DNA of 64,000 bases from Mytilus edulis (lineage: Eukaryota): contig NC_092347.1 of the NCBI RefSeq assembly GCF_963676685.1, positions 61,938,001-62,002,000 of the forward strand. The letters run 5' to 3'. Position 1 is the first letter of the stretch. Each line of letters starts with the position of its first letter. Below the pieces are notes generated by a model. That model was not told where the DNA came from. It did no database searches and saw only the letters and a list, made by a program, of their open reading frames with translations. Both the position numbers and the translations under genes were made by a program. Of this stretch, positions 38,901 through 41,900 are shown piece by piece.

Positions 38901-41900
38901 CTTTATTATTCATCACAGCGATGTTCATTTTGTTCAACCGCTAGCTTTATGCCGAACATCGACAACCAGTAATGTGTAAATCCGGGTAAAAACATATCTG
39001 ACTGTCAAAAACAACAATGGATGCCATCATTGGTACAACCGGAAATGTAAATAAAACCGGATCAGATTCTGGGAACGGATAAGGATAATTCCGGGTTTGC
39101 CGATTTAAATACAATAAATGAATAAAAATCCAAGCAGATCACAAAATTTAGCTATGAAATATAACCACAAGAATTGAAAACCAAAAGATATATGAAAAAG
39201 AAAGAAGAAACAGGAAATAATATTTTATACAGAAACTCTAAATTATGTTTAGTTCACAAACATTGTCAAAATCCAATAAAATTGGACATTACTCTTCACT
39301 GAAATGCATTCAAGCAATTGTGCACAACTTTCATAACAATATCCCCTGTTGTTACATCATTTTGTTTTAATTTGTGCATTTTGGGGAGGAGTAGGGCACA
39401 ACAAAGTCATATGTTTGTTGTTTTTGTCGGATAATATACAATTAGATGTAAAAAAAAAATTGGTCTGGTAAAATTTCATTCGGTCTGGTAAAGCTAGGAT
39501 GCTTACCAGACCGAATGTCCTGTAAAAATAAAATTCATTCGCGTAGTCTGGTAGTATCAATTTTAATTTCTTGATTTTTTAAATTTCACCTAAGTACATC
39601 CTTAACAGTAAAACCATGTCTTGTCTTTGGCACTACCTTTCCAGAAACAGCTTTCATTGACTATATCCCCCAAATGGAAGATAACGAATATGCAGTGCAG
39701 GCGATTTGGTGTCACAATATCACAGTAGCATGGGTTCGAATCCCGGCGAGGGAAGAACCATAAATTTGCGAAAGCAAATTTACAGATCTAACATTGTTGG
39801 GTTGATGTTTAGACGAGTTGTATATACATTATGTACACAGCCATGTATCACCATCATTGATGGCGATCCGATGGATACATCTGTTGTAGAGTTGTCACTG
39901 ACTCAGACGTACTTATAAATATAATTATTTTCTGTGACTGTATATTACATTAATTTGTAGGATCCTTTACTATAGATAATTTAGCTGATCTGTAACAATA
40001 ACATCTTCATGCCTTATATATCATGTACTGTAGTACGCCGCTAGATTAAAACTGACGAAGAAAGGTAACACACGGCCAGCGAAAGCTCTTTTATTGAGAG
40101 CCCAGGTGGTCGTGTGGTCTAGCGGGACGGCTGCAGTGCAGGCGATTTGGTGTCACGATATCACAGTAGCATGGGTTCGAATCCCGGCGAGGGAAGAACC
40201 ATAAATTTGCGAAAGCAAATTTACAGATCTAACATTGTTGGGTTGATGTTTAGACGAGTTGTATATACATTATGTACACAGCCATGTATCACCATCATTG
40301 ATGGCGATCCGATGGATACATCTGTTGTAGAGTTGTCACTGACTCAGACATACTTATAAATATAATTATTTTCTGTGACTGTATATTACATTAATTTGTA
40401 GGATCCTTTACTATAGATAATTTAGCTGATCTGTAACAATAACATCTTCATGCCTTATATATCATGTACTGTAGTACGCCGCTAGATTAAAACTACAAAG
40501 AAAGGTAACACACGGCCAGCGAAAGCTCTTTTATTGATAGCCCAGGTGGTCGTGTGGTCTAGCGGGACGGCTGCAGTGCAGGCGATTTGGTGTCACGATA
40601 TCACAGTAGCATGGGTTCGAATCCCAGCGAGGGAAGAACCATAAATTTGCGAAAGCAAATTTACAGATCTAACATTGTTGGGTTGATGTTTAGACGAGTT
40701 GTATATACATTATGTACACAGCCATGTATCACCATCATTGATGGCGATCCGATGGATACATCTGTTGTAGAGTTGTCACTGACTCAGACGTACTTATAAA
40801 TATAATTATTTTCTGTGACTGTATATTACATTAATTTGTAGGATCCTTTACTATAGATAATTTAGCTGATCTGTAACCATAACATCTTCATGCCTTATAT
40901 ATCATGTACTGTAGTACGCCGCTAGATTAAAACTGACGAAGAAAGGTAACACACGGCCAGCGAAAGCTCTTTTATTGAGAGCCCAGGTGGTCATGTGGTC
41001 TAGCGGGACGGCTGCAGTGCAGGCGATTTGGTGTCACGATATCACAGTAGCATGGGTTCGAATCCCGGCGAGGGAAGAACCATAAATTTGCGAAAGCAAA
41101 TTTACAGATCTAACATTGTTGGGTTGATGTTTAGACGAGTTGTATATATATATATATATATATATACAATAGAGTTTAATAAATCTGATGATGATAAATT
41201 TCAATGCAAAGAAGTTTAATAAATTTCATGATAAATTTAAATACAAAAAAGTTAATAAATTTCATGATAATTTTCAATAATCATAAATGCAAGACAAAGA
41301 TTAACTATCAATATATATGTTAAATATAAAGCTCACCATTGCCTACATTCAAATAAAACATTTGCCTGATAAGTAATTGTTAGTTACATATAACAACATG
41401 TAGTGTGAAATACATTTAGCTTTTTTATGTTTAAAAGTGTAATAGAAATATACTGTCTTTCAGGGGTAATAATATTGAGCATATGTCTTCTGTTACTATA
41501 TTGAGAATATCTTGCTTATTCTATTAAAATCATCTAATAAACAGACAAGAGGTTGTCAGAGTGAAAGCAAACCAGATTTTTCTGCAGAGGTTGAGCCCCA
41601 AACAGTTAAGCAAGTATGGACGCTACATTTAAGCTTAAACTGGCTCTGAATTTGGATTGTAGTTGGATATTTGCTAATTAGACACAGTGTCATCTCTTCA
41701 ATGGTTTCCATTTACAAGATTGAAATTATGTGAATGTGTAAGGGGAGACAATTCTGACAAAGTTGAATTATATATTATAAATTCAGAAATTATTGTGATG
41801 TTTTTATTATTGGTAAAAATGTGACAGCGTTAAATCACAATAATTTAAATTCGCATTTTGAAGTTTTTTAATATGAATTTATACAGAATTTTTCTCAATA

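Follow-up and report, generated by a model that had tools for sequence, protein, structure and literature searches.

In a 64,000-nt window of the Mytilus edulis genome (NCBI RefSeq assembly GCF_963676685.1, contig NC_092347.1, positions 61,938,001 to 62,002,000 of the forward strand), we found a head-to-tail array of a 441-bp unit that is likely an insertion of a young, non-coding, non-autonomous retroelement, which would use the reverse transcriptase (RT) and endonuclease of a Penelope-like element (PLE). Judged by sequence comparisons across the genome, the element is most likely a ribozyme-free, promoter-bearing, non-autonomous tandem retroelement of PLE type. The reading rests on where the copies of the unit end and start, on the parallels between these copies and those of a PLE family in the same genome, and on the frequent co-location of the two.

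Feature coordinates within the window are collected in Table 1, and positions in the unit are numbered with the prefix q, where q1 is window position 40100, the start of a tRNA-like head. Tandem Repeats Finder (TRF) calls the array at 39691-41148 with a period of 441, 3.3 copies, 98% matches and 0% indels, which together with the sequence itself confirms the tandem array described in an initial annotation of this DNA, including its left cut in the middle of the tRNA-like part and its (TA)n end. Several changes separate the units from one another. The array ends at q168 (window position 41148), within a (TA)12 run at 41143-41166, and the q1-168 part that forms its last, partial unit is also found as lone monomers (e.g. 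C1:28897617-28897790 and C1:23190338-23190517 on contig 1). The initial annotation had also proposed a paralogous empty site, and alignment places it at 48721/48722: similarity between the left flank of the array and the paralogous stretch runs to 48721, where the paralogue lacks the array; the array is therefore an insertion into an AT-rich site and the empty site is real. The paralogue belongs to a local duplication with ~10-kb spacing and 82-93% identity (38254-38399 versus 48215-48361, and 39586-39690 versus 48608-48721); from these alignments, the duplication is older than the array insertion and supplies the empty site.

Searching the whole genome (1.37 Gb; the window is on contig 4) with BLAST, we found the 441-bp unit at many loci. 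Arrays at the BLAST-selected loci contain 1.5-6.5 units, and all of them end at one of two unit positions with scattered starts. The BLAST alignments overrun to q171 and q265; the true ends are the last A of TATATA at q168 and the TATA at about q258-265. Exact 24-mers joining the unit to (TA)n occur 1,910 times in the genome for the q168 end and 492 times for the end at about q265 (~95 nt further), with 0 occurrences of the reversed control in both cases. There are more than 2,400 copies of the unit, and the internal junction between the leader (the sequence just upstream of the head) and the head is found 3,086 times. Identity is 98-100% within a dispersed array and has a median of 96.4% between arrays. 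On these sequence data, the family is young, has thousands of insertions, and is not a local duplication.

As an unbiased sample, we used the first 20 listed junction sites. The direct part of the insertions at these sites is 22-787 bp long and its length is continuous across both q441|q1 and q168|q169; in 11 of 19 cases the insertion continues past the head start into the 273 nt upstream of it, and 5 are longer than one unit. The lengths of the unit insertions form a single distribution that averages about 285 bp, with the 1.46-kb array of the window in its tail. Among the first 100 listed leader|head junctions (79 loci), 36 are in 15 clusters of 2-7 with ~441-bp spacing, i.e. about 19% of the loci that reach past the head have 2-7 heads at unit spacing. 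Given the 22-787-bp spread and the 15 clustered loci out of 79, other copies are therefore neither all monomers nor all arrays. The possibility that copies elsewhere are all monomers, with the array being a local unequal-crossover duplication, does not hold, as there are 15 loci with 2-7 heads and thousands of dispersed junctions. Most copies are short dispersed insertions; a long, satellite-like array (>10 kb, inter-unit identity 78-97%) is found at one locus. No open reading frame of at least 120 aa was found in the 10-kb unit array. Single units 1.6-3 kb apart on contig 13 were considered as pseudo-long terminal repeats (pLTRs) of a larger element and rejected, since the region is a continuous array.

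The 5' flank of the insertions is mostly (TA)n or AT-rich, and the 3' end invariably runs into (TA)n. Of the 20 sampled sites, 6 have inverted pieces: the array in L054 lies tail-to-tail over its (TA)n, and 5' segments are inverted in L058, L061, L065, L068 and L069; in L068 and L069, the second canonical end (q265) is the outer end of the inverted piece. The BLAST-picked loci L002 and L021-L023 likewise have tail-to-tail arrays or inverted 5' segments. In line with the retro-copy idea of the initial annotation, these copies form a dispersed, retro-copied family whose multimers are truncated and non-integer and whose 3' end is fixed and lies in (TA)n. The insertion ends put the unit in the order q169..441 followed by q1..168, with the tRNA-like part in the 3' half.

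The 5' ends are scattered with one hot spot. (TA)3 is joined exactly to q1 79 times, as compared to 22 times for the control q70 and 2 times for the control q306; q70 is nearer the 3' end and hence expected to be commoner than q1 under plain truncation. Copies starting at q1 include 168-nt monomers as well as arrays of 1.34 and 3.43 units. A share of the templates therefore appears to begin exactly at the tRNA-like head, and the hot spot points to linear RNA templates with a defined 5' end; templates starting at the head are as expected for an internal promoter of RNA polymerase III (Pol III) type, which suggests that the head acts as one. (AT)4A is joined to q169 only 20 times, therefore a linear monomer RNA that begins at the end/start junction is not strongly indicated. 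Most templates reach beyond q1 into upstream sequence, as 3,086 heads follow a leader. The element had been called tRNA-headed, a label that is misleading with the tRNA-like part in the 3' half; that the head matters is borne out by the hot spot (79 versus 22 and 2).

PLE insertions are known to have strong 5' truncation, frequent partial tandems, and often an inverted 5' copy plus a 30-40-bp extension; Naiads are biased to (TA)n, and the CX2-5CxxC linker has been proposed to mediate the microsatellite bias of Neptune-type elements (Craig et al., PMC8557442). The unit insertions show this signature, with a microsatellite target, 5' truncation, tandem and inverted copies, and a short extension past the end. 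The genome has many GIY-YIG matches. In one PLE family (9,469 first-look candidates), open frames of 791-799 aa encode an RT plus, C-terminally, a GIY-YIG domain preceded by CNDPRCGLC (a CX4CX2C linker); copies of this family are 99% identical, and the family is, judged by its sequence, active. Copies of this family stop at (TA)n in one of two places, directly behind a TATATA or, 40 nt on, at the one that follows, which at the sequence level is the same end logic as that of the two ends of the unit. This PLE was also found as a head-to-tail tandem with a period of 3,665 bp, accompanied by an inverted piece. Where one PLE copy ends and the next starts in this tandem, 17 of 18 nt are in common with q163-180 of the unit, a stretch that spans the corresponding end/start junction of the unit; a search for longer homology to the untranslated regions of the PLE yielded nothing beyond this 18-mer.

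The two families are also found together. In the first 54 Mb of contig 1, 5 of ~8 independent GIY-YIG loci have a unit junction within 3 kb (expected: about 1%). Among 12 PLE loci retrieved solely by their GIY-YIG score, 2 have unit arrays in the same (TA)n tracts as the PLE, and so do 2 of 3 further PLE loci. At L045, the unit was considered as the 3' end of the PLE copy and this was rejected, as it is a separate insertion in the (TA)n tail of the PLE. From the 18-nt motif, the common end logic and the co-location, this PLE is the putative partner of the unit. The copying machinery is best explained by a Penelope-like RT/endonuclease, considering the PLE-style ends, the co-location and the junction motif; a Penelope-like RT had been suggested in the initial annotation. 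Our Rfam search of the PLE found no ribozyme (including hammerhead) and no tRNA. In every copy of the PLE that we saw (L045 and L047), the 3' untranslated region contains, as a reverse complement, ~95 nt from where the coding region of the PLE begins; by this the ends of the PLE RNA could pair with each other.

A mechanism can be proposed from these observations. The PLE endonuclease would cut a (TA)n microsatellite, and the exposed DNA end (...TATA-3') would pair with UAUAUA in the unit RNA (at q163-168, less often at about q258-265) and prime cDNA synthesis, which would stop at variable points or run to the 5' end of the RNA, resulting in random 5' truncation. As (TA)n is self-complementary, both ends of the break could prime, which would give head-to-head inverted pieces with both canonical ends facing outward. 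The (TA)n tail of each copy would then be a fresh target, so that later insertions would come to lie beside it, in direct or tail-to-tail orientation, or nested with copies of the PLE. Templates of more than one unit would most likely be linear multi-unit transcripts of source arrays, or result from template jumps, because the lengths are continuous across unit boundaries; another share of the templates would start at the tRNA-like head via the Pol III-type internal promoter. Long arrays would be the tail of the length distribution, probably enlarged later by unequal crossing-over. The autonomous PLE shows the same tandem, inverted and 'next TATA' behaviour, so that tandem copies look like a property of the integration machinery.

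Partial tandems, inverted copies, short extensions and the microsatellite preference are unexplained features of PLE integration. The 441-nt passenger shows this behaviour in an easily tabulated form (two fixed TATA sites for the proposed priming, continuous 5' truncation, and priming that apparently can start from either end of the break), and the proposed mechanism, if true, would account in concrete terms for the tandem and inverted arrangement of PLE insertions, which has long lacked an explanation. It would further mean that tandem non-coding passengers of PLEs need no hammerhead, which bears on the requirement for a ribozyme in the retrozyme life cycle, and that one family links a promoter-bearing module resembling a short interspersed nuclear element (SINE), a dispersed tandem repeat and a satellite-like array. 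More tentatively, and with rather less confidence than in the use of PLE enzymes as such, we suggest that the element may be the first SINE-like partner of a PLE and a ribozyme-free counterpart of retrozymes, in which a Pol III promoter gives the RNA its ends and self-complementary (TA)n lets both ends of the break prime.

The tRNA likeness of the unit head, according to the searches, is limited. It had been annotated as tRNA(Leu/Ser)-like; the T arm/B box and most of the A box hold up (Table 1), whereas ARAGORN finds no tRNA at default or 90% thresholds and the Rfam search of 186 nt gives no tRNA match even at E ≤ 10. At 80% thresholds only, ARAGORN reports a degenerate cloverleaf. The hairpins listed in the initial annotation are all present in the minimum-free-energy (MFE) fold, which contains the leader/head pairing, the GNRA hairpin, TCTAACAT/ATGTTTAGA and CCATCA/TGATGG. 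The + strand is folded more stably than shuffled sequences (z = -4.55), the - strand to a lesser degree (z = -3.03). No hammerhead was found in the unit by Rfam at E ≤ 10 (in 3 kb and in 186 nt), in agreement with the earlier statement that a canonical one is absent, and at E ≤ 10 on 186 nt twister, pistol, hatchet and HDV-like (hepatitis delta virus) ribozymes were unmatched as well. One hammerhead look-alike (Table 1) was rejected: the A15.1-U16.1 pair is missing, helices I and II do not form, and unit 2 of the window array is without the first box (CUGACGA).

Several points weigh against the proposed use of PLE enzymes. The sequence common to the PLE and the unit is short (17 of 18 nt; on its own, the BLAST E-value is about 0.01). 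Target-site duplications are unreadable inside microsatellites. Other PLE families also end in (TA)n (L043 here), as do Naiads (PMC8557442), and the partner is thus not pinned down. Repair of breaks at fragile (TA)n tracts, primed by TATATA, could mimic part of the signature. Finally, a covariation check on 67 units gave a mixed outcome: some pairs (a few) show compensatory changes, but changes that break a pair occur as often as in shifted controls, and the copies are without clear structural constraint.

Among the other explanations, we weighed a ribozyme-free 'retrozyme', in which the unit RNA is cut out (e.g. at the tRNA-like structure) and closed into a circle that a PLE RT copies over several rounds into multimers. 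Abundant circular RNAs of 350-400 nt from hammerhead retrozymes have been found in mussels (PMC7229834), and the fixed 3' end, the non-integer multimers with lengths continuous over unit boundaries, the near-identical units within an array and the highly structured + strand would all suit such a cycle. The units of the window array itself, however, differ by several changes, the hot spot at q1 points to linear templates that begin at a defined position, none of the ribozymes searched for is matched, and the 3.66-kb PLE makes like tandems and 'next TATA' ends with no circle needed; because the PLE behaves alike, a circular RNA is possible but not required. Products of RNase P/Z are not known to be substrates of the RtcB-type ligase used by retrozymes. 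We consider this explanation unlikely, and with no ribozyme the element is therefore not a retrozyme as defined. The rolling-circle copying of a circular RNA in the initial annotation is accordingly not supported, and its further suggestions of RNase P/Z processing or an unrecognised self-cleaving motif are without support.

A process at the DNA level, in which (TA)n breaks are repaired by TATATA-microhomology synthesis on ectopic arrays or extrachromosomal satellite circles without reverse transcription, is in our view improbable. In its favour, (TA)n tracts are known to be fragile, the two junction sites are microhomologies of TATA type, and the satellite-like array of >10 kb is a possible donor. 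Yet a strand-neutral process does not predict that the fixed end is always 3' on the strand with the promoter-like head, nor a 5'-end hot spot exactly at the head start, and it leaves unexplained the strong co-location with one RT-encoding family, the common junction motif and the common end logic.

Very unlikely is an ordinary tRNA-derived SINE that was moved by a long interspersed nuclear element (LINE) and formed arrays later by unequal crossing-over. There are indeed 168-nt copies that begin at a defined position and combine a tRNA-like head with a (TA)n tail, and tandem and palindromic SINE structures have been reported in bivalves (PMC11481361). However, 11 of the 19 sampled insertions continue past the head start, and the leader is found before a head 3,086 times as against 79 times for (TA)n, meaning that copies mostly do not start at the head; two ends at successive TATA sites, frequent inverted 5' pieces and a motif in common with a PLE are traits of PLEs and not of LINEs. 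No LINE-type tail was recognised in the unit, and no search for a LINE partner was made. With most copies not starting at the head and an architecture that is not LINE-like, the element is therefore not a standard SINE.

The least probable explanation, to which we give next to no weight, is that the unit is the internal satellite of a Helitron/Helentron or other DNA element: Helitrons do insert at AT dinucleotides, but no conserved left or right flanks at a fixed distance were found among 861 flank pairs, arrays directly abut (TA)n or unique DNA, the start points vary, and the 5' TC and 3' CTRR ends are absent. Oyster Helentrons are reported to have short satellite arrays beside microsatellites (PMC7492417). 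For 840 of the 861 pairs, the flanks are without similarity, and the remaining ones match at positions and in orientations that vary, which is what unrelated interspersed repeats would give. As there are no consistent shared flanks, an enclosing DNA element is excluded and the unit is therefore not a Helitron-borne satellite, a possibility that the initial annotation had named as one that would refute a retro-copied origin.

The retroelement reading can also be compared with known systems. Animal non-LTR retrozymes (without long terminal repeats, LTRs) are tandem hammerhead repeats of 170-400 nt, proposed to be non-autonomous PLE derivatives (PMC7229834; bioRxiv 10.64898/2026.07.22.740005). 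Like them, the 441-bp family consists of dispersed, short head-to-tail non-coding arrays (unit length within 150-450 nt, without LTRs) of low G+C, is PLE-linked in a mussel-type genome, and has satellite-like arrays too; unlike them, it has no hammerhead or other Rfam ribozyme, and has a tRNA-type promoter-like module with a 5'-end hot spot there. In this comparison, the similarity between unit and PLE is confined to the end/start junction. With the canonical PLE clades that have a C-terminal endonuclease and the CX2-5CxxC linker, and with Naiads (PMC8557442), the unit shares insertion into (TA)n, heavy 5' truncation, tandems of partial copies, 5' copies in inverted orientation, a second possible end some tens of nt inside the following copy, and the junction motif; it differs in being 441 nt long without an open reading frame, in having more copies per array, and in its own promoter-like module. 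Bivalve tRNA-derived SINEs (PMC11481361) are similar in the A- and B-box-like head, the 168-nt copies with a simple-repeat tail and the occasional tandem or palindromic structures, whereas in our family the head is not the 5' end of most unit copies and the insertion architecture is PLE-like. The short satellite-like arrays beside microsatellites in a bivalve genome are also reminiscent of the oyster Helentron arrays, which lie between constant element flanks (PMC7492417); the 441-bp arrays are without constant flanks. Another relevant system is Sm-alpha of Schistosoma. It is a SINE-like, tandem and dispersed unit of ~330 nt with Pol III boxes and an active hammerhead; our family likewise combines putative Pol III boxes with a retrozyme-like organisation in a tandem, dispersed unit, and lacks the hammerhead.

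Table 1. Features of the 441-bp element and its insertion site in the window (positions on the forward strand; a dot denotes a feature without strand).
Feature	Position	Strand	Basis or remark
Array of the 441-bp element, 3.3 units: q33..441, then two complete units, then q1..168	39691..41148	+	TRF, sequence, BLAST tiling
First unit, 5'-truncated (q33-441), cut inside tRNA-like part	39691..40099	+	
Unit 2, full, 440 nt, private leader variant ACTACAAAG	40100..40539	+	
Unit 3, full	40540..40980	+	
Last unit, partial, q1-168 = 168-nt SINE-like module found alone at other loci	40981..41148	+	
(TA)9 past the unit's own TATATA; microsatellite target/tail	41149..41166	.	Identical junction 1,910 times in genome
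Paralogous empty site, AT-rich stretch	48721..48722	.	Alignment
tRNA-like module	40100..40194	+	Repeated 40540-40634, 40981-41075; partial 39691-39753
A-box-like stretch of tRNA-like module	40107-40117	+	9/11 match
T arm/B box of tRNA-like module	40173-40185	+	Perfect
Long hairpin, leader x head (CCGCTAGA/TCTAGCGG, CACACGGCCA/TGGTCGTGTG)	40025..40139	+	MFE folds
GNRA hairpin, perfect, 8-bp stem, GAAA loop	40203..40222	+	Sequence, MFE fold
T run just 5' of head (T4 here, T7 in family consensus); possible Pol III terminator	40089..40092	+	
End/start junction of retro-copied unit (q168|q169)	40260..40279	+	
Second site of TATA type (about q258-265), serving elsewhere as another 3' end	40357..40364	+	
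Hammerhead look-alike CUGACGA ... CGAAAGC, not a ribozyme	40052..40086	+	

Other observations concern variants and relatives of the unit. A G/A change recurs at the unit CpG 'CAGACGTAC' in many independent arrays (alignment A1), as expected from deamination of methylated CpG. A deletion variant at L045:6707-7066 (-) is without ~q172-356 (q330-436 + q1-171, then q357-434 + q1-180) and is repeated with ~252-bp spacing. At L048:5205-5339 (-), there is a diverged relative of the tRNA-like module (73% over q73-143, plus q7-23), tail-to-tail with a PLE across a (TA)16 run; by this similarity, older or sister families may exist. A recurring AAGTGTCTAAGAAT...-like sequence is found on the far side of (TA)n tails (the L006 downstream flank, L045:3900-3965, the L050 3' flank and the L022 5' flank), and is probably the 3' end of another (TA)n-homing element in tail-to-tail orientation.

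Elsewhere in the window, a 36-37-bp AT-rich tandem repeat (~3 copies, 41164-41279) is directly 3' of the (TA)n tail, with ~1 copy in the paralogue. A near-perfect 17-bp hairpin (cattcggtctggtaaagc ... gcttaccagaccgaatg) is at 39469-39517, preceded by a partial direct repeat of the same word; the Rfam search of this hairpin returned a chance small RNA (sRNA) match only. An inverted repeat at 48357-48633 (128-nt arms, 80% complementary, 21 nt between) has the look of a foldback element or a miniature inverted-repeat transposable element (MITE). Other short tandem repeats are at 46926-47200, 49714-49938 and 50537-50958, with periods of ~161, 126 and 150 bp and 75-89% identity.

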